Below the pieces are notes generated by a model. It was not told the DNA's origin. It searched no databases and saw only the letters and a program-made list of their open reading frames with translations. 64,000 nucleotides of DNA from Phaeosaccion multiseriatum (taxonomy: Eukaryota; Protista; Ochrophyta, other classes): assembly GCA_965112735.1 (NCBI GenBank), contig OZ218959.1, forward strand, positions 2,294,001-2,358,000. The letters run 5' to 3'. A program made the position numbers and the translations under genes. Within the stretch, counting starts at the first letter, position 1; every line of letters starts with the position of its first letter. Shown here piece by piece: positions 1,976 to 63,882 of the stretch.

Positions 1976-3529
1976 ATGGGGCTTCTCACACTGCTCCGGA
2001 AGCTGAAGCGATCAGATCAGGAGGCACGTATTCTGGTGCTGGGGCTGGACAACGCGGGAAAGACGACAATCCTAAAGAAACTGTCCGAGGAGGACATCAC
2101 CCACATTATGCCCACGCAAGGCTTCAACATCAAGAGCCTCATGCACGACGGCTTCAAGCTGAACGTGTGGGACATTGGAGGCCAAAAGTCTATCCGCCCG
2201 TACTGGAGGAACTACTTTGACCAAACTGATGCGCTGGTGAGTTGGTGGGGGGTGAGTGAGTGGAGTGGGTGGGTGAGTGCGTGGGTTGGTGAGTGACTGG
2301 GTAAGTGACTGGGCGAGTTAGTGGGCGTATGAGCGGGTGAGTGGGTGAGTGAATGATAGAGGGAAGGAGGGGGGGATGGAGCGATGAGTACGTGAGTGGG
2401 TGAGTACTTGAGTGAGTGAGTGGCTGCGTGGCTGAGTAGGTAGGTGAGTGAGTGGGTGAGTGAATGAGTGAGTGGGTGAATGAGGGAGTGAGTAAGTGAG
2501 TGAGAGAGTGAGCGAGTAAGGGGCTGAGTGAGTGAGTGAGTGAGTGAGTGAGTGAGTGAGTGAGTGAGTGAGTGAGTATGTGAGTGAGTGAGTGAGTGAG
2601 TGAGTGAGTGAGTGAGTGAGTGAGTGAGTGAGTGAGTGAGTGAGTGAGTGAGTGAGTGAGTGAGTGAGTGAGTGAGTGAGTGAGTGACCACCTCCTTTGA
2701 GGTCAGGACATATGCGTTTCTGTGCCCTGTGCATTCGTATCCTTAGTGTCAGGAATCACTGCTTTTTGGACATCACAGAATCACACATTGGCTTTGTTAT
2801 CTCCCCCCTCTCTCCTCCCTCATCCGTGTCCTCTCCTTCTTACTCTTTCCGCCGCATCGGGTCTCTCGTCCCTCGTCTCCTCCTCCTCCTCCTCCTCCTC
2901 CTCCTCCTCCTCCTCCTCCTCCTCCTCCTCCTCCTCCTCCTCCTCCTCCTCCTCCTCCTCCTCCTCCTCCTGCTCCTCCTCCTCCTCCTCCTCCTCCTCC
3001 TCCTCCTCCTCCTCCTCCTCCTCCTCCTCCTCCTCCTCCTCCTCCTCCTCCTCCTCCTCCTCCTCCTCCTCCTCCTCCTCCTCCTCCTCCTCCTCCTCCT
3101 CCTCCTCCTCCTCCTCCTCCTCCTGCTCCTCCTCCTCCTCCTCCTCCTTCTCCTCCTCCTCCTCCTCCTCCTCCTCCTCCTCCTCCTTCTCCTCCTCCTC
3201 CTCCTCCTCCTCCTCCTCCTCCTTAGATCTACGTCATCGACTCAGCCGACAAGCGACGAATGGACGAGACTGGGGTTGAGCTCGGTCAGCTGTTGGAGGA
3301 GGACAAGCTGAGCGGGGTGCCCGTGCTCATCTTCGCCAACAAACAGGACTTACTCTCCGCCCTGCCTCCAGATGAGATTAGCGAGGGCCTGCAGCTCACT
3401 TCGATTCGCGACCGCACCTGGGTGGTACAAGCCTGCTCGGCCAAGACGGGCGAGGGGCTACAGGAAGGCATGGAGTGGATAGTTGCCAACATGAACGAGG
3501 GGGGGGGCGATGGAGAAGAGAAGGGGTAA
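1976..3529 (+). CDS. ARL3: ADP-ribosylation factor-like GTPase 3 (ciliary Arf-like GTPase), 2 exons
   Basis: Exon 1 1976-2236 [53 protein letters not shown]; exon 2 3227-3529 [37 protein letters not shown] intron. Divergent from RPC5. Confidence 0.95.
2237..3226 (+). repeat. ARL3 intron filled with (GTGA)n (~2240-2690) and (CCT)n (~2875-3222) microsatellites
   Basis: Directly visible simple repeats; source of the SLTH, poly-L and poly-S ORFs. Confidence 0.95.
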
Positions 3530-4355
3530 AAGAGGAGGGGAGGGGGGGGGGGGCGCTGCGGAGGGAGAGAGAGGAGCTCCACCGGATCGGTGCCCTGCGT
3601 GCGGCGAAGCGTGCAGCCGATGAACGGAGGCGCAAGAGCAGCAGTTGGTGATACAGCAGCAGCCTCAGTAGTGCCAGCAGCACCAGCACCAGTCCAAGCA
3701 AAGCCGCCGTCATCGTAGCTCGAGTGGTAGGCTCTGTGAGCACAAAGGGCACAGGGGGGGTGACTAATCATGCCACCTCAGTTGCTCGCTGCTGTTGCGG
3801 AGACGATGGTGGATTGGGGGAGAGAGGGGTAGGGGGGGGGGGGGGGTGGAAGGAGAGAAGCTGGGGTAGGGGGTGGGGAAGGGCGGGGCGGTAGACGAGC
3901 GCGCGAAGGATCGCACGTCAGCCGACAAAGAGAAGGCAGCAGAAGGCGACACTGTTACACAGTTACACAGTCTATGCTGTTTGGTTGTCGATAAGTGGTC
4001 GGGGCCTAATAGACTGAAACTGAGACTGCACCGTACAGTCTGGAAGGACTGAAAGAGCGACGCTACGGCGGCGACGGGGGCTTGGGAGGGGAATGCCTTA
4101 GGCTGCCTTCCTTCCTGTTTAAGTGCTTTGCTTCTGGGAAGAGAGGAACCAAATACTTCAAAAAAATAAGAAATGCACGTCGCAATTTCTGTCCCGCTTG
4201 AAGAAGCCTAAACTGTCCCGGGCACGGCCGCGGCTGCGAGAGCCACAACCGTACCTACGTCCTCCCCACTCTCTTCTGGTCTCATCGAGCCAAGCAAGCC
4301 ATTCTCTGTGTGTATCAAATCTGCGCTATTCTAAATTAAAATTTGTGTACGCTCT

Positions 4356-13979: not shown

Positions 13980-13988
13980 TTCTAGGGG

Positions 13989-14174
13989 TGTTGTGATAAG
14001 TATCGCCATTTGTGACTGAGCACTATATCGACGTACAATATCGATGTGGATATCGATGTTCATGTATGGCCACGGCCATCACTTCCTTGAACGCATCTCT
14101 CAGTAGGTATTATTAATACACGAGTTGACACTACTCTAGCTTGTCCCTGTCATCGTAGAGGAGATATCGCAACA
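13989..14174 (+). repeat. 5' LTR of the copia element
   Basis: Identical by eye to 19208-19393. Confidence 0.97.
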
Positions 14175-14287
14175 CGACAGCTGTCGCGACACTTCACAGC
14201 TAGCTGGTTCTACGTAGTCGGCGACGGCACACAGGCGAGTTTTGGTCGGATAACTCAAGTGAGAGAGAAGGAGTCCTTTCGTTAGCC

Positions 14288-15256
14288 ATGCCAGGCGCGG
14301 AAGAAGAAGGCGTTGAAAAGGCGGACGCAGCGGCGCCCGTCAGTGCGAGTTCCGCGATAGAAGGAGACGCACAGCAGCAGATGGCTGAAATGATGGAAAA
14401 GATGATAGCGGCAGCGTTGGCCAAACACATCACACAGCAAGGAGTGCCCACGGCAGCGGCCGCAGCACCAGTCACTATCTCCTCAGTCGGAGGAACAGTG
14501 ACCCCCAGCGGGGGGGGGAGTACAGCACAGCAGCTGCTAGAACTCACGTTCAAGCCGAAGAACAATGAGTTTGACAAGAAGTTGGAATCGGAGGGAGTGA
14601 TGCCTCTCTTGCGATTTATGCGAGCGGTCACGGATCACATAGGGGGGATGGGGGCAAAGGCATTCTTGGTGGATAGTGATAAGATCCCCAACGCAGACGA
14701 CGCCTCCCGGGACTCTAAGTATGCCCTGACGTTCAGTCTGTACCAACAGACGGGCCTCAAGATTTTGGAGGCCATTCCCTCGGACATGAGGGATGCCATA
14801 GAAGAACGCACTCGCACAGCGCGGTTCCAAGTGGACCTGGTACTATTGATGCAGGCAATCAAGGAGGCAGTGATGGGGAGCACGCAGTCACAGCGACAAG
14901 AGTTTCTCACCTCCGAGATGCACGATCTGAGGCCAGGGGTGGGGGAGACGGGACTTGCCTACCTCAACAAGTTTCTCCAACTCAACGTGTTGATGACGGA
15001 GGAGCAGCTTCCTATGTCCTACTCCATCATCAAGGACAAGTTCCTCAGGCGTATGGGGCAGAGATGGGAGTCGTTCGGCCAAGTGCACGGTCATTCGGTA
15101 GAGACAGAGGACGAGTTTAATCGGTTCAAACAGCAAGTGCAGCGGTTTGACAGTGACCTCCAAGCGCAAGCGAGGGAGGCGGGAGAGGACCTTGAGCGGG
15201 GCCTTTTCCACATTTACCAGCAAAGGCAGAAGACACAGCAACCAGCAGGGGGGTAG
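14288..15256 (+). CDS. gag: Copia gag (N-terminal part)
   Basis: 322-aa ORF just downstream of the 5' LTR; the CCHC knuckles continue in the +1 frame. Confidence 0.8.
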   Translation: MPGAEEEGVEKADAAAPVSASSAIEGDAQQQMAEMMEKMIAAALAKHITQQGVPTAAAAAPVTISSVGGTVTPSGGGSTAQQLLELTFKPKNNEFDKKLESEGVMPLLRFMRAVTDHIGGMGAKAFLVDSDKIPNADDASRDSKYALTFSLYQQTGLKILEAIPSDMRDAIEERTRTARFQVDLVLLMQAIKEAVMGSTQSQRQEFLTSEMHDLRPGVGETGLAYLNKFLQLNVLMTEEQLPMSYSIIKDKFLRRMGQRWESFGQVHGHSVETEDEFNRFKQQVQRFDSDLQAQAREAGEDLERGLFHIYQQRQKTQQPAGG

Positions 15257-17426
15257 ACAGACCACCACAGGGGCAGGAGAGAAAGATCGGTCCAACACAC
15301 GCTGTTACAGGTGTGGGAGAAAGGGGCACATGCGGACGACGTGTCCGTCCAAGGAGGAGCTGTGTTTCAACTGCCACAAGCCGGGGCACCAGCGTGCAGA
15401 CTGCCCAAACAGCAGGAAGAAGAAAGATGGCGAGCATGTGGAAGGCTCCACCAGCACCATTTTCAGCATTCCGTGGACGCTACAGGAGAGGGGGAGCGGC
15501 CATTCTCTCTACCATATGTCCAAGCTGAAGTCGGGGGCGGATGGCACACGGCAGGGGCTCGCAGACAGCGGATCGGCGCTCAATGTGTGGCCCAACTTGG
15601 ATGGACTGTACGATTTCTGCGCTCATCAGAGTTTAGTGCAACTCGCAGACGGCAAGTCGCACGCGCAGATAATGGGCAAAGGGAAGGTGAACATCAGCTA
15701 CGTCTCCAACGACGGCAAAAGAGGACTGAAGGGGCTGGAGGTAGTGGTGTCGCCAGACGTACCTTTCTGCATTTTTGCAGAGAAGAACCTCTCAGACCTA
15801 CTGGGGGGGAGCGCAAGGCCAGCGGGGAAGCCAGTCTATTTCGGCCCCTCAGCAGACGCACCAGAGACGGTGCACACGACGCAGGACCCAGAGCTGGGGC
15901 TTGACATGCTACAATTCAAGATCGAGGAGGCCACGGAGCAGTGGAGTGATTACATGACTTACCACTGCAAGAAGGGCCACCGCAACGATCAAGAACTACG
16001 GCGACAGGCCAAGCTGGAAGGCGTGACACTGTGCGGGAAGAGGGCGCCGTGCAAGACTTGCGCAGAGGTGAAGATGACGAAGGCAGCTCAGAGTAAGCAG
16101 TTCATCGACTACCCCAAGGCACCGCTGGCACAGGTAACGCTCGACACCATTCCTCTCGAAGGAGAGCACGTGTTGCAGGCGTGCTGCCCGCACACGGGTA
16201 TGGGCTGGTGCAGGAAGGTGGGGGGAAAGACGGAGGCGCACTTCCAGAGCGTGTATGACGACCTCAACACCACAGTATTCATTCCAGGGGAGAGGACAGC
16301 GGGGTACAAGGTGCAGTGTCTGTCAGCAGACAACGGATCGGAGCTCATCAAGACGAAGGCCGCGAAGAAGATGCTCTACTCCCAGGGCATTGAGGTAAAG
16401 CTGACGGACCCCAATTGTCAAGCGCAGAACGGACTGAACGAGGCTCGACACAAGGAGCTGGCGCGAATGTCTATTCTTTTCATTGAGGAGGCGAAGCTGG
16501 AGGAGCACTCGAAGCAGCTGAGGTTCGTAGCGTACAAGTTGGCGCAGCTTCTCTACAACACCAGGTGCAGGAGGGGGCAGCAGCAGTCCCCCTACGAGCT
16601 GTATTTCAAGCGCAAGCCTGACCTACAGCACCTACACATCTTCGGAGAGCAGGCGAAGGTGCGGGTGGGCAACAAGAAGCACAAGCAGTGGCACAACGAC
16701 AAGACGCACTCGGCAGTGTACGTGGGACAGAGCCCCAACCACAGATCAGCCTGTCTCCTTTTCTACATCCCTTCACAGAAGCGGTTCATCTCCAGCTCGT
16801 CCTACACATTCGTGACGAACCGCAGACACGACGGCACGGTGTTCGGGAGTCACGTGGAGAAGGGGAAGCTACCAGAGACAGCGGAGAAGGAGGATGACAG
16901 CGAGGACGAGGACCAGCCCTCGAGCAGCGGGAGCAGCAGCAGGAGCAGCAGCAGGAGCAGCAGCAGGAGCAGCAGCAGTAGCGCGAGCGGGGGAGGTGGG
17001 GGCGGGACCAAGAGTGGAACCGTCACATGGAACACGAGATTAGAGGAGGCACAGCCAGCCCCACAGCAGCAACAGACATCACGCTGGGAACAGGTTCTCA
17101 CCCGAGAGTTCGTGGAGAAGTTACAACTCGAAGGAGAAGGCCTGGAGCGACGTCAGCACGCCGAGCGGCAACAGAGGGAGCAGACGGCAAAGCAGCAACA
17201 GAGAGAGCAGCAGAAACAGCAAGTAGAGCAGCAAGAGCAGCAGCAGCAGCAGGCAGAGCAGCAACAGGCAGAGCAGCAGCAGGAAGAGCCAACGCAGCAG
17301 GCTGAGCCGCCAGAGAGAGGCAAACTCTGGACATACGAGGTGGCCAAAGATGGCGACAAGGGAGCCAAGGAGCACGACTGGGGCCACGATCCCAGCCTGG
17401 GCCGCACGCGTAGCGGCAAGCACTGA
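15147..17426 (+). CDS. pol: Copia nucleocapsid, protease and integrase ORF
   Basis: Two CCHC knuckles (CYRCGRKGHMRTTC, CFNCHKPGHQRADC); protease LADSGS; integrase HHCC (YHCKKGH..CKTC) and D-D-E (TLDT, SADNGSEL, NGLNEAR). Confidence 0.92.
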   Translation: MTVTSKRKRGRRERTLSGAFSTFTSKGRRHSNQQGGRQTTTGAGEKDRSNTRCYRCGRKGHMRTTCPSKEELCFNCHKPGHQRADCPNSRKKKDGEHVEGSTSTIFSIPWTLQERGSGHSLYHMSKLKSGADGTRQGLADSGSALNVWPNLDGLYDFCAHQSLVQLADGKSHAQIMGKGKVNISYVSNDGKRGLKGLEVVVSPDVPFCIFAEKNLSDLLGGSARPAGKPVYFGPSADAPETVHTTQDPELGLDMLQFKIEEATEQWSDYMTYHCKKGHRNDQELRRQAKLEGVTLCGKRAPCKTCAEVKMTKAAQSKQFIDYPKAPLAQVTLDTIPLEGEHVLQACCPHTGMGWCRKVGGKTEAHFQSVYDDLNTTVFIPGERTAGYKVQCLSADNGSELIKTKAAKKMLYSQGIEVKLTDPNCQAQNGLNEARHKELARMSILFIEEAKLEEHSKQLRFVAYKLAQLLYNTRCRRGQQQSPYELYFKRKPDLQHLHIFGEQAKVRVGNKKHKQWHNDKTHSAVYVGQSPNHRSACLLFYIPSQKRFISSSSYTFVTNRRHDGTVFGSHVEKGKLPETAEKEDDSEDEDQPSSSGSSSRSSSRSSSRSSSSSASGGGGGGTKSGTVTWNTRLEEAQPAPQQQQTSRWEQVLTREFVEKLQLEGEGLERRQHAERQQREQTAKQQQREQQKQQVEQQEQQQQQAEQQQAEQQQEEPTQQAEPPERGKLWTYEVAKDGDKGAKEHDWGHDPSLGRTRSGKH

Positions 17427-17462
17427 CATGCTGTCTCCTCCATACTAGGCCCACTCTTTCTG

Positions 17463-19070
17463 ATGCCAGGCCTAAAGGAGAGCGAGGTACCGATACCGCG
17501 GTCTCTGGCCCAGGCTCAAGCAGGAGAGTACGCGGAGCAATGGACGGAGGCGTACTGGGCAGAGCTCAACGCGATCGAGCAACGCCAGGTATGGGAGGAG
17601 GTTGATTATCAAGAGGGGATGAATGTGCTGCATACAGTCATGCTATTCAGAGCAAAGGTGACTGGGGGACTTGTGGATAGGCTCAAGTGTCGATTTGTCG
17701 TGATGGGGAACGAGCAGATCGAGGGGGAGGATTACTTTGATACCTTTGCACCAGTGGTGGGGAGCTCGACGATGAAGATGTTCTTTGCTATCACGTGCCA
17801 GAAGAAGTGGGTATTGGAGTTTGCAGATGTGGAGACGGCTTTCCTGCATGCACCTCTGCATGAGGGGGAGTACGTGTACATTAGAGCACCAGAGGGCATG
17901 AGAAAGTTCGGGAAGGTGCTGAGGCTGTTGAAGAGTCTGTACGGTCTTCATCAGTCTCCCAAGAGGTGGAACGAGACAGTGGTGGCATTTCTACTCGCAA
18001 TGGGGTGGGTACAGTGCCCAGTGGATCCGTGTCTGTTCGCCAGGTTCGAGGAGGGGGAGCTAATAGGGCTCATCATTCTATATGTAGACGACCTAGGAGG
18101 GTCAGGGGAGGGAAATCTCATTGACTGCACTTTCAAGGAGATTGACGAGCGTTTCAAGTTGAAGCGTTTGGGGTCGAATGTGGGGAAATTTCTGGGAGTT
18201 GAAGTTGACTACGCATTCGAGGCGGGACAGCTCAGGCTTTCGCTAGGAGGGTATCTTAGAGCGATGCTTGAGAAGTTCGACATGACGGAGGTACCTGTGT
18301 ACGGCTCACCAGCAGAGCAGGGGGTACATTTGTCAGTGGGTATGGAGCCAAGCACCACAGAGGAGGAGGAATTCATGCAGGACAAACCATACTGCTCAGC
18401 GGTAGGGTCAATCCTATGGGTTGCCAACTGGGTGAGGCTTGATGTATCCTTCGCCATCATGCAGTGTGCTCGTTTTATGAAGAGGCCGGGGCCTCGACAC
18501 TGGGCAGCATTGCAGCGCATTTTCGGGTACTTTAGAGGTAGTTTAGACTTGGGAATTGAGTTTGATCGAGAGGCGGGGCTTCATCTGGAGGCATACGCAG
18601 ACTCGAGCTGGGCAGATGACGTCGACAGGCGCAGGAGCTCAGGGGGATACGTCGTGACATTCGGCGGGGGAGTGATTGCTCACAAGGCAACACTATTTAA
18701 GGTCATAGCACAGTGCTCTATGGAGAGTGAGTACATGGCCGCAGCGGAAGCAGTGAAGGAGTTGCTGTTTCACAGAGGGATTCTGGAGTTTCTGTTTCCA
18801 GGAGCCAACATGACGGAGTCGATTGTGCACGAGGACAATCAAGGGTGCATTCAGATGGCAAATGGCAACGCGGGCACCAAGCGCGTACGTCACATCGACA
18901 TTCGTTATCATTTCCTGCAGTACCACGTGGACAAGGGACACGTTCGGTTTCAGTACATCAGCACAAAGGACCAGCTTGGGGACATCATGACCAAGGCATT
19001 GGCACCTCAGGTACACAGCGGTCTGGCGGGGCAGATGCTCAAGAAGGGAGACAGGAAAGGGGGGGACTAG
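17463..19070 (+). CDS. pol: Copia reverse transcriptase and RNase H, in frame with the upstream ORF across one TGA
   Basis: RLKCRFVVMG, ADVETAFLH, LLKSLYGLHQSP, LYVDDL; RNase H YADSSWA, SMESEY, EDNQG, RHIDIRYHF, DIMTKAL. Confidence 0.95.
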   Translation: MPGLKESEVPIPRSLAQAQAGEYAEQWTEAYWAELNAIEQRQVWEEVDYQEGMNVLHTVMLFRAKVTGGLVDRLKCRFVVMGNEQIEGEDYFDTFAPVVGSSTMKMFFAITCQKKWVLEFADVETAFLHAPLHEGEYVYIRAPEGMRKFGKVLRLLKSLYGLHQSPKRWNETVVAFLLAMGWVQCPVDPCLFARFEEGELIGLIILYVDDLGGSGEGNLIDCTFKEIDERFKLKRLGSNVGKFLGVEVDYAFEAGQLRLSLGGYLRAMLEKFDMTEVPVYGSPAEQGVHLSVGMEPSTTEEEEFMQDKPYCSAVGSILWVANWVRLDVSFAIMQCARFMKRPGPRHWAALQRIFGYFRGSLDLGIEFDREAGLHLEAYADSSWADDVDRRRSSGGYVVTFGGGVIAHKATLFKVIAQCSMESEYMAAAEAVKELLFHRGILEFLFPGANMTESIVHEDNQGCIQMANGNAGTKRVRHIDIRYHFLQYHVDKGHVRFQYISTKDQLGDIMTKALAPQVHSGLAGQMLKKGDRKGGD

Positions 19071-19207
19071 TTTTAGTTCAGTAGTTTTAGTATGAGGTTT
19101 TCAGGACTTTGTCTCGGGGGGGTTTTAGGGCAAGTCAGGTGTTTCCTCATTGTGTTTGTGGTAGAGTGTCAGCTATCAAGAGAGATAGTGATTCAGTCAT
19201 AGGAGGG

Positions 19208-19393
19208 TGTTGTGATAAGTATCGCCATTTGTGACTGAGCACTATATCGACGTACAATATCGATGTGGATATCGATGTTCATGTATGGCCACGGCCATCA
19301 CTTCCTTGAACGCATCTCTCAGTAGGTATTATTAATACACGAGTTGACACTACTCTAGCTTGTCCCTGTCATCGTAGAGGAGATATCGCAACA
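19208..19393 (+). repeat. 3' LTR of the copia element
   Basis: Identical by eye to the 5' LTR; followed by TSD AGGGG. Confidence 0.97.
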
Positions 19394-20339: not shown

Positions 20340-21345
20340 ACCAACGGCCGAGGACCCACCACCTCAGAGTCACTCGGCGTGGCTGTACGTTGCAGCACTC
20401 TCTACGCGGCACGGGCGGAGCACGTACCGACGAGCCTGAGCCCCCCCCCCACCTGGCTGGGGCTGCAGCAGTTGGTAACTATGTGTGTCTCACTCACAGC
20501 CTCCTCTCCCCATACACCTCTACATCAGGCACACGCCTCTTCTAGGGCATGCTCTTATTCGCAGCAAGCAAGACCATCTCTTCCTCTCCTTTTCTCCATC
20601 TCCCTCCCTCCCTCCCTCCCTCCCTCTCTTCTCCCCTCACCTCCCTCCCTCTCCCCTTCCCTCTCCCTCCCTTCATCTCCTTCCTTCTCTCCCTCTCGTC
20701 TTCCCTCACCTCACTCCTCCCCCCCTCCTTGTTCCCTCACCTCCCTCACCTCCCTCCCTTCCTCCCTCCCTTCCTCCCTCCCTCTCCCACTCATCCATCC
20801 AGTGTGACTTTGCTGGAGGCTCGCCCTTTTGCAGCGTCTCTGCCCCGTACCTTCGCATGGTCGATGGCCTGTTCCTGGTGTTGCTTTGACGTTACAAGCT
20901 CCGAATCCCTTGACCAGCTTCAGGAGATGATCGCTCGCTCGGCCGGACATTGTCGGGCACCTCTGACCTTCCGTCAAGATGATCCTGCTCGGCACTAAGT
21001 GCGACTGTAGGTGCGTGCGGTCCAGAGGAGAGGATCGATCGCTCGCACGTTGAAATGATTCATGGGAAATATCAAGAAAAGGTGGCCTCATGCACACCCG
21101 TCGCTTCTCTCTCTCTCTCTCGCTTCTCTACGGACTCTCTTCTCTCTTCTCTCTCCTCTCCCCTCCCCTGTGCATCTTTTCCCTTCTTCCTTCCTTCGCC
21201 GTAGCCTGGAGGAGAGGCAGGTCTCAGATGCCCAGGGCAGAGCTTCGCCGAGCAGCTTGGCATCCCCTACATGGAAGTGAGCACCAAGGACGGCAATAAC
21301 ACCTCCAGAGCACTCTACCACATGCTTACTTCCGTTGTGCTAGAG
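20340..21345 (+). pseudogene. Degenerate Rab/Ras-like small GTPase pseudogene
   Basis: Frameshifted exon relics: DFAGGSPFCSVSAPYLRMVDGLFLVFDVTSSESLDQL (G3 region, after removing a 4-bp insertion), MILLGTKCD (G4), EERQVSDAQG(R/A)FAEQLGIPYMEVSTKDGNN (G5), with splice sites. Confidence 0.7.
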
Positions 21346-22400
21346 GTATGTGTGTATTACCAATGCGTGAGTGTTTGTGTGTGTGCGTGTGTGTGTGCGT
21401 GTGTGCGGGAGTGTGTGGGTGGGTCTGCATGAATCCTCTCGTCAAGCGGCTTCTTGGCTCACAGTCTTCTTCTGTCCACTCTCCCTCCCCCCCCCCTCTC
21501 TCTCCCCGTCTTCTCCACCTCTTTCTCTCCTTCTCCTTCTCCCTCTGATCCCAACCTTCTCTCTAGCATGCCATCGGCCCAGGGGGGTCTCCTCAGGGCA
21601 AGAAAGCGCGTGTGAGCTTCTCCGCAACATCGCAGCAGCAATGGTTTCTATCCGGACCAAGTAGACGGGGCAGCAGCATTGGGGGCGACGGCACTCTTAC
21701 AGCGGCAGTCAGCCCGGCTTCGTCGAGCATGGTGACGTCAGCAGCAGAGGTAGCGGGGGCTTCAGAGCTGCGGCGGAGGCCGCCGTGGCAAGCCTTGGGC
21801 GGGAGCAGGCAGAGGACGAGGTGGGCGAGGAGACGGCGGGGGGGCAGTCTGTGGCGTTGTCTCCTTCGTCTCAGCATCAGCGGGGTCGGGGATGGAAGGG
21901 CTCTTCCCGTCGAGGCTCCTCAGCCTTGCTTGATGAAATGAACATTACGTCGGCAACCGCGCGGCCGACGAAGCGTTGGCTACCCACCCTCGTCGCCAAA
22001 ACCTCGGCCTCTTCGTCCTCTTATGGCACCACCACGGCGGAAGAGGACCCTCATCGCACCAGACAGCGGAGGGGCGGTGACCGTTGTGGAGGAGAGTGAA
22101 GTTATGGAAAGAGAGCCACTGGTCCAACGTCAGCCGTCGAGCTCGGAGGTCCTTCCCGCTGCTACTGCTACTGCTGCTGCAGCTGGTGATGGTGATGGTG
22201 ATGATGGTGATGATGGTAACTGTCTCAACTCACGGGGTATGAGAAGAGAGCGAACAAGAACGAATCGTTCCAATCGTGGCTATCACCACTCGACACGAGC
22301 ATGTCGGCTTCGAACAGCGTCAACGGGGCGGACGGAAGCGTCAGTCCCCGAGAGAGAGAAAGGGTTCATGACATGAAGTCCCCCCCCGGGTCCCCGCCCG

Positions 22401-23470
22401 TTGCATGAGTGGACGAAATACGCAGTGGTCGATCTGGCTGAGTTTATCACATGCAACACTACGCACACCTTCCTCCGTAAGGGCTCCGGACGAGAGGCTC
22501 TGTCTTGGCTGCAGCAGCAGTTCGAGGGGAACCCGGACATCGCGGGCATGATGGCGATGGCAGCACAGGGGGGTGGTCTTGAGGGGGCTTTCGGAGCTGG
22601 GGGGGAGGCGACAGCAGCAGCAGCCAGCGCAGCAAGTGGCGGTAGATAAGCTGCCTCGCTTTACGGTGGAGGAGAACAGTTGGGATTTTGTTCCAGACCT
22701 CTCTCAAGCTCTTCACCAAGGCGACTCCTCAAGATGCAGTGTGCGTTGATGCGCTCTTCGCAGACTTCGCCCCCCCCCCCCGCTGCTGGCTGGGCCCCTC
22801 CTTGCAGCCCTCGTCCTCGCCGACCCTCCCACGGGCCATCCCCGCTACATAAACGGGACGGGGGAGGAAGACAAGAACTCTCTCTGCGGCTCTATTGTGG
22901 TGGTGGACCGCGGGGGGTCGATCTTTGCGACGAAGCAAGGCACTCGAGGCACAAAAGGCAGGCGCCAAGCAAGGCCGTAGCTAATCATCGTCCAGACGGT
23001 GGATGTGTGGCCCTATGTGGTGAGTGTAGCGTTGTCGTCTCGATCGGCACCTCCTTTGCGGACTGTGCTTTCTTTGCCTACTGGCCTGCTGCGCTCTCTC
23101 ACACTTCACCACACACCTGCTGCCCTGCCCTGCCCTTCGCAGATGAAAGACAGCAAGGGAGAGGCTGCGGAGGGGGGCCTGAGCATCCCCGTGTGTATGG
23201 TCGACCAGCGTGGGGGTAAGCTCATCAAGGCCATGGCTGCTAAAGGGGGCCACGGAGGGACAGGGATAGCAGCTTACATTGGCTTCATCGGCTTCTGCAC
23301 TTGCTGCGGCTGCTGCTCTGATCTGCGAAATGACCGTCAACGCGGCCGTCAGAGAAGGACTGCGTGGTGTGCGAGGAGCTATTCCAAGTGGGCACCACGG
23401 TCGTGCGTCTGCCGTGCGGGCATCTGCTGCCTCTACCATGAAGAGTTAAGACAAAGGCGCGCTGGCTGAG
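22401..23470 (+). pseudogene. PA-domain + RING-H2 E3 ligase pseudogene
   Basis: VDALFADF; GSIVVVDRGGSIFATKALEAQKAGAKAVIIVQ (PA motif, restored by deleting three 4-bp insertions); IPVCMV; CVVCEELFQVGTTVVRLPCGH-LYHEE (RING-H2 start). Stops and frameshifts present. Confidence 0.8.
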
Positions 23471-25267
23471 TCCTTTCCCTTGTTCTTTTGGCCTGACTGC
23501 TGTAATTGTCGTAGCTACCGTAGGGTTCTCTCCCTCTCTCCCTCTCCCTCTCCCTCTCCCTCTCCCTCTCTCTCGGTGCATGCTTTTCTCCCTCTTTCTC
23601 TGCAATAACACACCCACTCCCCCCCCCCCTCTCCCCTCTCTCAAACAAACGGCTGGTGCATAATTCATTGGCTTCTCAGCGCCGGCGTACCTGTCCTGTT
23701 TGCCGCCTCGAACTTCCTTCCCAAGACGCCGACGCCGAAGCTGCCCGGCAGAGGAGAGCGAGGGCAAGGGAAGGTGCAGAGGACTGGAACGACTGGTTCT
23801 CGTAGCTTGACAGGAAGGCCACGACGAAAGGATGGTAAAAGAGAGCTGACTCGATCATGCACGCGTGTTGTGGGCCCACCTTGGAGGAGACGAGTGGAGT
23901 GGGAGGTGCCAAGCAATCCAAGGGCCTCTGACGGAAGGGGAATGGGAGCATGTCTTTGGGCTTCGGGCAGACAAGTCAGACAAGTATGTCTGCTTTGTTG
24001 ACCACCGTGGTGGGGTGGAGGCCGCTGGAAAGGAGACTCCGTTACTCGAGCATTTGCTGCCGTGTGCTACTTGCGGTGCGGTTTCTGCTGCTGTTACTGT
24101 GGACATGTATTGCTCTGTTCGACCCCTGACACGCTATCCGCTATCCGCTATCGAGAAAGTGGGCGATAGCGTGTCAGGGGTCGAACACATACACACACAC
24201 ACACACACACACGCACCCACACTTCCGAACCTCCATGATGGGTTATTCATGTCATAAGTTACTTTCGGATATACACCCACTCCTGCGGAGACCCTCTTGT
24301 CTCGTCTCGCGAGTGCTTCTGCTGAGGGACGAAGGAGTTACATCTCTCCCCTCTCACTCTCCGTCGCCACTCCCCTAAGTAGCCAAAAATCCCGCCCCCC
24401 TTCTATTGACTGTTGGAAGGCCTCAGATGAGATGGTCCTTAATGGTCGGTGTGTCCTATACTACATAGATTCTGAGTGGCAACGGGCCGCTCAGTAATAG
24501 GTGAACTTGGTAAGGAGAGCCTAGCAGCAGGGCTTGCAAACGTGTTCCATCCCGGCTAATATACTGAGTGTTACCACTTGTCTAAGCGACTCTAGTCGCT
24601 TTTACATGACATACTACACCCTTACACCTCCCACTCCCCCACGGCTTCCTGGCTCTTGCTCCACAGCAGCTCCATGTTGTCCTTATTGTTGAAACGCTCA
24701 TCGATGGGCAGGTTCACCGCAGGGCCCCAGCAGCCCCCCATCTTGGTGCATCCGTAGTACTCCCCCGACTTGACCTCGGGCATGAAGGCACAAGTAAGGA
24801 TGCCGCAGGTGCCGTCCTCTGAGCTCTGGGCAAGCATACGTATGCCCCCGACCGCGAACTTTGGCATACCCCCTGACGGTGTGTGTGTGCGAGAGAGAGA
24901 GAGAGAGAGAGAGAGTGCGTGAGTGAGTAAGTGAGGAAGTGTGTGTGTGAGAGAGAGATTGAGTGAGTAGGTGAGTTTGTGTGTGCGTGTGAGAGAGATT
25001 GAGTAAGTAAGTGCGTGTGTGTGTGTGTGCGTGTGTATGGAAAAGGAAGGAGAGACACGACGAGGGGGCGAGGCAAGCGCGTGGTTCATTTAAAAGACAA
25101 TGTGGCTACATGAGGTACAGTTTTGAATGAAATGTGGCAATCGGGTCGTGTTGCGAGAACAAAGACAAGCATCCTGCCATCCACTGCCATGGCTTGGCTG
25201 TGACATCCACTGCCACCGCGTGGGTGTACATAAGATCATGTGAAACATCACGTACCGTCCGTCACAG

Positions 25268-62759: not shown

Positions 62760-63882
62760 CTATCCCGGTGACCAATGTACTGGAAGAACCTTACTGCTAC
62801 CCATTCTCCCTCCAATACTTGCAGCTGTCTTACTTCTTCCTCTGTTGATAGAACTAGGACGGGGGGCGGCGCCCGAACCTCTTCGAGTGAATGCCCCTCT
62901 GAAAACGAAGTAGAACGCTGTGAGTTCCCAGCCCATAGCGCATATTCTATGCAGTATCATTGCAGCAGAGGGCCGCTGACGCATCCACGTACTCATTGGA
63001 TCAACGAGGATGAAGAAAGTGACAGAGGAGCCACTAACCCGGATGGAGGATATAGCACCCCGCACGTACTGGCACTGCGTCTTGATCTTGCGCAAGTCTG
63101 GCCCTAGCTCGGGCATCGTCTTAAGCATACCGAGCAGGGAGGTGGTGGCCACTACAATAGCAGGGAGGTGGTGGCCACTACAATAGCCCCACACAGTGCG
63201 CTGAGAAAGGGCATCGCAAGGGCGAGCCCAGTCCAGAACGTGAAGTAGCCTGGGAGAGCAGCCAGTGCCACGCAGGATGATGTCCCTGCGAAGGCCATAG
63301 CAGCCAAGAGTACCCAGAATCGGCTCTCCACCCAGTTCTGAAGCCGAAGAACGCTTGGTGCGCGAGACAGAAGGCTCCGCGGTAAGGCAGCAAGCCACAG
63401 ACGAAGAACCAGCCATCCATTTCCTATGCCCAACCAAGCAGAGGCACCAAGTAAGCACCAGGCCAAGGCGTCCTCCAGCACCCATATTCCACCATAGAAC
63501 CTTCCAGTACAGATGAGTATGGCTGTTGTGGTGAAGAGGATGCAAAGCATTGCTCCTATCAATCTGGTTTGTGCTACACCCGTCTTCGTCTCCTGCAGCA
63601 GTGCCTTCACGCCTCCCCTACGCCGTACATGTCTGCCGAGTATGTACACCACATCGACCAGGTGGACAGCAAGGATGAGCAGAATTACCATCTCGGGAAC
63701 ATCGAGGTACGCCTTGGCAACAGCCACAAGCACTGCCTGTCTCCCACGATGTTCTTGTCGTTGTATCCGTCCCCACAGCCCGAGCAAGTCGCCGTAGTTT
63801 CATCGCATACGCCTTCGCTGTGGCTTGGGCGGCCAAAGGTCGAGGCGGCCTCGTCCCGGCACGCCAGCACGCACGCAGACAT
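62760..63882 (-). pseudogene. EGF-like + 7TM protein, copy 4, frameshifted
   Basis: Two 4-bp insertions (63721-63726, 63733-63738) and a 26-bp tandem duplication (~63133-63188) relative to the intact paralogs. Confidence 0.85.

Follow-up and report, generated by a model that had tools for sequence, protein, structure and literature searches.

Dead gene copies of the ochrophyte Phaeosaccion multiseriatum carry a recurrent small insertion in which a pair of bases is duplicated around a fixed GC (XY-GC-XY), most densely in a PA-RING relic on contig C10. The insertions are missing from the corresponding paralogs, favour pyrimidine-purine (YR) steps as the duplicated pair, are strongly clustered, and occur on four contigs of the genome. 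We tentatively propose that each of these scars records the repair of a double-strand break, cut at a YR step with a 5' stagger of 2 nt, in which a G was placed on each 3' end, and that the enzyme concerned was most likely a transposase. The window, i.e. the whole stretch of 64,000 nucleotides that was analysed (G000:C10:2294001-2358000), belongs to a genome of 67 Mb in 22 contigs, has a GC content of about 56% and contains introns of the GT-AG type. Scars were surveyed by all-against-all alignment of the window and 73 loci of the same genome, together about 330 kb, giving a total of 16 perfect XY-GC-XY scars and three variants (Table 1).

Two segments of contig C3 (loci L002/L032/L039; C3:2924247-2936118) make up the dead Rab and PA-RING locus, where they are joined in swapped order at 22480/22481. 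PA exon 1 runs to 23008 in segment B+C, which further holds a 135-bp intron, the RING exon and a 3' flank. Homology to C3 stops at 24122, right at the start of a 71-bp MITE (24117-24187, TIR TGTTCGACCCCTGACACGC); a search for the partner TIR of this boundary MITE found none.

A search of the organism's own genome identified an intact paralog of the dead PA-RING copy on C3 (91% identity), and base-by-base alignment with this paralog gave the polarity of the insertions. The C3 copy (L002/L032) lacks each of them, and its open frames encode exactly FATKALEAQKAGAKAVIIVQ and GLFLVFDVTSSESL; they also read GLFLVFDVTSSESLDQLQEM. The ancestral state, which a first-pass annotation of the window had deduced by deleting the 4-mers, is thereby shown directly. 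Matched to Pfam exon by exon, without joining, the C3 frames correspond to the PA (2e-9), zf-RING_2 (3e-6) and Ras (3e-10) domains. The same parent reads FLVFDVT without the 4-mer of the Rab relic, as had been proposed, and lacks the insertion suspected near 23424 in the RING finger, which is confirmed as ctgctgcct, a +7-bp variant of the form CT-GCTGC-CT. All hexamers named in the first-pass annotation (aagcaa twice, tagcta, ttgctt, cagcca and ctgcct) lie where it had placed them (starts in Table 1). Its sites were thus correct, whereas its count was too low, as the PA-RING copy holds 11 private insertions relative to the C3 parent, spread over 892 bp (22621-23512): nine perfect XY-GC-XY scars, one CT-GCTGC-CT and one CT-GA-CT. 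Only 27 substitutions are found across the scarred stretch of about 0.9-1.1 kb (2.5% in segment B), and the C3 parent itself has no insertions of the XY-GC-XY kind.

Table 1. Scars and copied segments. Positions refer to the window unless another locus is named.
Feature	Position	Strand	Comparison and remarks
Dead-copy segment A, with Rab/Ras relic exons	20600..22480	+	paralog C3:2926142-2924247, 93% identity
Dead-copy segment B+C	22481..24122	+	paralog C3:2936118-2934460, 91-93% identity
GG-GC-GG, dispersed repeat copy	20413..20418		private 4-bp insertion relative to paralogous repeat copy
TT-GC-TT, Rab relic exon	20881..20886		4-bp insertion only in window copy; compared with C3 parent
CA-GC-CA	22621..22626		C3 alignment; alternative reading as CAGC tandem duplication
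TG-GC-TG	22787..22792		C3 alignment; split by BLAST into 4+1 beside a poly-C length change
AA-GC-AA, PA domain	22933..22938		C3 alignment
AA-GC-AA, PA domain	22967..22972		C3 alignment; alternative reading as CAAG tandem duplication
TA-GC-TA, PA domain	22978..22983		C3 alignment
TG-GC-TG, exon 2	23234..23239		C3 alignment
CG-GC-CG, exon 2	23343..23348		C3 alignment
Variant CT-GCTGC-CT (+7 bp), RING finger	23424..23432		C3 alignment
TG-GC-TG, RING exon	23463..23468		C3 alignment
Variant CT-GA-CT, same 2-bp duplication, filler one base off GC	23493..23498		C3 alignment
TA-GC-TA, RING exon	23512..23517		C3 alignment
CA-GC-CA, 7TM copy 4	63721..63726		paralog comparison
CT-GC-CT, 7TM copy 4	63733..63738		paralog comparison; 8 ancestral bp from the 63721 scar
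TG-GC-TG, C11	L018:984		all-against-all alignment
CA-GC-CA, C7	L024:1307		all-against-all alignment
Variant TA-GGCC-TA, C7	L024:1436		128 bp from the L024:1307 scar
CT-GC-CT, C4	intron, just upstream of 3' splice site		apparently intact aquaporin paralog

The duplication of two bases of varied sequence around a fixed GC, as described in the first-pass annotation, recurs at unlinked loci. The stretch around the scar at 20413 matches C16:610835-611217 at 93%. Both insertions of 7TM copy 4 are private to that copy and missing in more than 17 paralogs (a four-way, then a 17-way comparison), in agreement with the ancestral state assigned to them earlier. The C4 scar came from a pair of multi-exon aquaporin paralogs (L049 and L050; C4:2.265 Mb and C3:1.870 Mb) with exons that are 82-91% identical and introns that have diverged; the scar is in an intron of the C4 copy. 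Since this paralog appears to be intact and its scar is intronic, the underlying process acts at the DNA level rather than specifically on coding sequence.

Other lesions are found beside the scars in the 7TM family. In copy 4, 26 bp are also perfectly duplicated in tandem (63129-63187; GCTATTGTAGTGGCCACCACCTCCCT on the minus strand), which is an ordinary lesion. Another dead 7TM copy, a fragment (L012 ~3804-3882; C10, ~2367.7 kb) carries an independent 4-bp tandem duplication, GGCA|GGCA, near position 3860, only 2-6 bp from the copy-4 scar site, and the intact copies are all clean there. Judged from these sequences, the site looks like a recurrent hot spot on which selection has also acted.

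Chance is excluded as the origin of the XY-GC-XY pattern. When random 4-mers were put into the window sequence and scored, 1.4% took this form, as compared with nine of the ten non-tandem 4-bp insertions in the dead copy (binomial p = 3e-16) and 16 of 44 across all ~330 kb examined (binomial p = 1e-18). Plain hexamer counts in the window proved unusable as a test, as microsatellites raise every XY-NN-XY class. Among the 19 events, all show an exact XY...XY duplication that is missing from the paralog, and 18 have a filler of the form G...C. The duplicated pair is YR in 11/19, against a background of 21% (p = 6e-4), and never RY (0/19, p = 0.01); it is TA in three cases, the remainder being TG, CA, CT, AA, CG, TT and GG. 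Twofold symmetry of the flanks is weak.

Simpler descriptions of the insertions were considered. A plain 4-bp tandem duplication fails for nine of the 11 scars of the dead copy, in which GC stands in place of different template bases; the scars at 22621 and 22967 can be read equally well as tandem duplications, owing to the C and G that happen to flank them. A 3-bp duplication with one added base (NNG-C-NNG) is ruled out by TA-GC-TA|A and AG-GC-AG|T.

The scars are distributed very unevenly. Within the 3.5-kb block derived from C3, 11 of 12 are packed into 892 bp (scan statistic P = 1e-4), with three inside 50 bp and two inside 12 bp, and the remaining 2.6 kb has one. Piece C (595 bp), although collinear with B in the copied block, has no scars against 11 in B. 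The other paralog alignments of the window (~8.5 kb, 94-95% identity, ~45 indels) contain no XY-GC-XY scar at all. The earlier suggestion of a major mutational force in this genome is therefore overstated and holds locally only. All 12 scars of the C3-derived block are in former exons or an ORF, and none in about 2.4 kb of non-coding sequence. Exon-specific targeting was nevertheless rejected, as the bias is inseparable from the regional clustering (for the 135-bp intron, the expected number is only 1.7 scars) and is contradicted by the intronic scar on C4.

We infer the stagger, the origin of the G and C and the involvement of a transposon from the form of the scars. A double-strand break with a 2-nt 5' stagger would arise at a pyrimidine-purine step, and filling in of both overhangs would duplicate the two bases (XY...XY). 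One extra G per 3' end would then yield joined ends of the form XY-G|C-XY, and two extra bases per end would yield XY-GG|CC-XY. If the enzyme is a cut-and-paste transposase, the scars would be excision footprints. The element would duplicate 2 bp of its target, carry 5'-G(G)...(C)C-3' ends and, as in Tc1/mariner, be cut one or two bases in from these ends. Dense clusters would arise if it re-inserted nearby time and again or if its targets were strong hot spots, and scars would survive only in places where selection allows, such as dead copies and introns. This transposase reading is ranked first because a constant, self-complementary filler beside a target duplication is the classical form of a footprint. 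The GC and GGCC fillers are the leftovers expected of symmetric G(G)... ends, and a dimeric enzyme would fit the preference for YR, the lack of RY and the weak twofold symmetry of the flanks.

In Tc1/mariner-type footprints, the duplicated target encloses terminal bases from each of the two inverted repeats. Excision footprints of Mariner and Stowaway elements, consisting of the target duplication and terminal repeat bases, have been described (PMC4561436). The scars resemble those of Tc1/mariner and Stowaway MITEs in combining a duplicated 2-bp YR target with a few terminal bases, and in leaving frameshifting +4/+5 scars in genes. However, the Tc1/mariner target is strictly TA, whereas the pair found here can be any YR and is sometimes RR/YY; the Tc1/mariner filler is of the CA/TG type, whereas the filler here is GC, with no matching element in the ~330 kb; and the density of scars is far above that of any reported footprint cluster. 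Footprints of known transposons are also usually more varied than the ~85% of one form seen here, which counts against excision. The footprint reading is further strained by the need for extraordinary cycles of insertion and excision at one place to produce 11 footprints in 892 bp, while 2.6 kb of the same segment has a single scar and 8.5 kb of other paralogs has none.

CACTA/En-Spm (Tpn1-type) footprints likewise consist of a target duplication with filler, and are small insertions that shift the frame. These elements duplicate 3 bp of target (2 bp in Mirage), and their CAC...GTG ends would leave C...G, as opposed to the G...C seen here. A CACTA-type 3-bp duplication with a 1-bp filler is excluded by TA-GC-TA followed by A. 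The first-pass annotation had offered excision footprints of a CMC/EnSpm-Mirage-like element or an unusual repair signature; this pair of options stands, but the CMC/EnSpm-Mirage assignment is not supported, as its ends would leave C...G.

When larger insertions and inverted ends were screened in the ~330 kb, neither an element that duplicates 2 bp of its target nor one with G...C termini was found. Fold-back elements and MITEs with duplications of 6-8 bp were all that the screen of larger insertions gave. Two MITE insertions were seen in L021 (2795-2987 and 3091-3209; C2:1.73 Mb), with TCGG/CGAC-CCCTGACA ends and target duplications of 6 bp (AGAGTC) and 8 bp (CCACCAGT); both are missing in the tandem paralog L022. 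A Harbinger/ISL2EU candidate was also rejected, since DDE_Tnp_4 matched only a pair of 2.1-kb copies, 99% identical to each other, in which no inverted repeats were detectable; ISL2EU/PHIS targets are AT-rich. These two Harbinger-type copies (L042:1037-3163 and L043; C1:5.64 Mb and C5:3.47 Mb) represent a domesticated gene or, alternatively, a segmental duplication of recent date. Dispersed short 'words' that might serve as a mobile unit were sought in the window and none were found, and the literature on Fanzor and Replitron has no bearing on the scar. In all, neither an enzyme nor a mobile element behind the scars was found in the ~330 kb, and a literature search found no published description of the scar.

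A transposon is unnecessary if the breaks were made by a cellular enzyme, in keeping with none being found in the ~330 kb. It is possible, if rather doubtful, that an undescribed element-free process is at work, in which a Spo11/topoisomerase-type enzyme or a domesticated transposase makes breaks in narrow hot spots that are sealed with a fixed G per end, riddling unselected sequence. More specifically, staggered breaks with protein-linked 5' ends may occasionally have been filled in and end-joined rather than cleanly religated, which we consider unlikely as the source of the scars. Spo11/topoisomerase VI, with a 2-nt stagger, and topoisomerase II, with a 4-nt stagger of which the two outer bases would be lost or unreadable, are the candidates; a polymerase would place the G at each 3' end, and the clusters would mark hot spots of cleavage in meiosis or in transcribed regions. 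The stagger of Spo11 and Topo VI equals the 2-bp duplication of the scar, which is compatible with such a 2-nt 5' stagger and equally with a transposase. Trapped Top2 is known to cause de novo duplications of 2-4 bp through end joining, and the cluster of ~0.9 kb has the size of a hot spot (scan P = 1e-4). Most of the placed scars are in exons, relic exons or an intron, leaving out those on C11 (L018) and at 20413; the two C7 scars are just outside the scored gene match. The scars also share with the Top2 signature (yeast top2 hyper-cleavage mutants; human ID17/TOP2A K743N) small insertions of 2-4 bp, local clustering and, on this reading, the fill-in of a staggered protein-linked break followed by end joining. 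Top2 events are, however, perfect tandem duplications, whereas the scars have a central G and C whatever the template, and only 2/11 can be read as tandem. Dead copies do hold plain, non-repeat 4-bp tandem duplications as well, but these are centred on RY, not YR, steps, and so look like a separate process rather than the faithful outcome of the same cut. A constant filler of two bases is not known to us from any scar of Spo11 or a topoisomerase, and a default G is ad hoc. Element-free breakage accounts for the clustering and for the lack of an element in the ~330 kb; the fixed GC is left unexplained by it.

Other processes have less in their favour. Scars could have been written in one event by a sloppy repair polymerase while the fragment was copied, e.g. 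in break-induced or templated-insertion repair. The scarred sequence is indeed a partial and rearranged copy, with A and B+C swapped relative to C3, and it combines many scars with only 2.5% substitutions in B; yet B and C form one collinear block of which C (595 bp) has 0 scars against 11, isolated scars are found in tandem family members and in the intron of an intact gene, and no polymerase is known to us that writes a fixed GC, so that error-prone copying appears quite unlikely. Inactivation triggered by duplication or guided by RNA, loosely comparable to RIP, would cut redundant copies and leave frameshifting scars. In common with RIP, redundant copies are heavily mutated locally with little change elsewhere: clustering is at its densest in dead copies that are redundant, and the 12/12 scars of the C3-derived segments in former exons or ORF, with 0 in ~2.4 kb of non-coding sequence, would suit such targeting. 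This exon bias, however, may equally be a matter of regional clustering, as noted above, with 1.7 scars expected in the 135-bp intron. Moreover, RIP makes C-to-T transitions in both copies, whereas here there are insertions in one copy and many duplicates escape: those of 94-95% identity are scar-free, and only part of the duplicated block is affected. As a scar is also found in the intron of an apparently functional gene, and selection alone can explain the untouched parent copy, we regard RIP-like inactivation as very improbable. An assembly or polishing artefact is scarcely credible. The known long-read error modes are errors in homopolymer and short-repeat length, not 2-bp local duplications around GC, and the scars are in one paralog per pair, in unremarkable sequence, on four contigs, and beside pseudogene indels of 1, 7, 9 and 26 bp.

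A single stereotyped indel makes up most of the non-repeat 4-bp insertions seen, and its number can exceed one third of that of the point substitutions in a dead copy. It represents a mutational signature without description in the literature searched. If the scars are transposon footprints, this stramenopile-type alga would have a highly active element, not seen as yet, that duplicates 2 bp of its target, and the scars would serve as a marker of its past activity. If they are element-free, they would be a sequence record of the genomic targets of a staggered-cutting enzyme, and of the way in which this lineage repairs such breaks. In practice, +4 frameshifts of the XY-GC-XY form are to be expected in gene annotation of the P. 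multiseriatum genome.

Two further repeat families were noted. The window contains a young copia-type LTR element (13986-19393) with 189-bp LTRs that are 100% identical, and at least six full-length copies of this element, with 98-100% identity, are present in the genome. An intron sequence of RRN3 (L052 ~2825-3047, C7) belongs to a satellite of ~115 bp, which forms long arrays on C10 (708-715 kb) and has scattered copies on most contigs.
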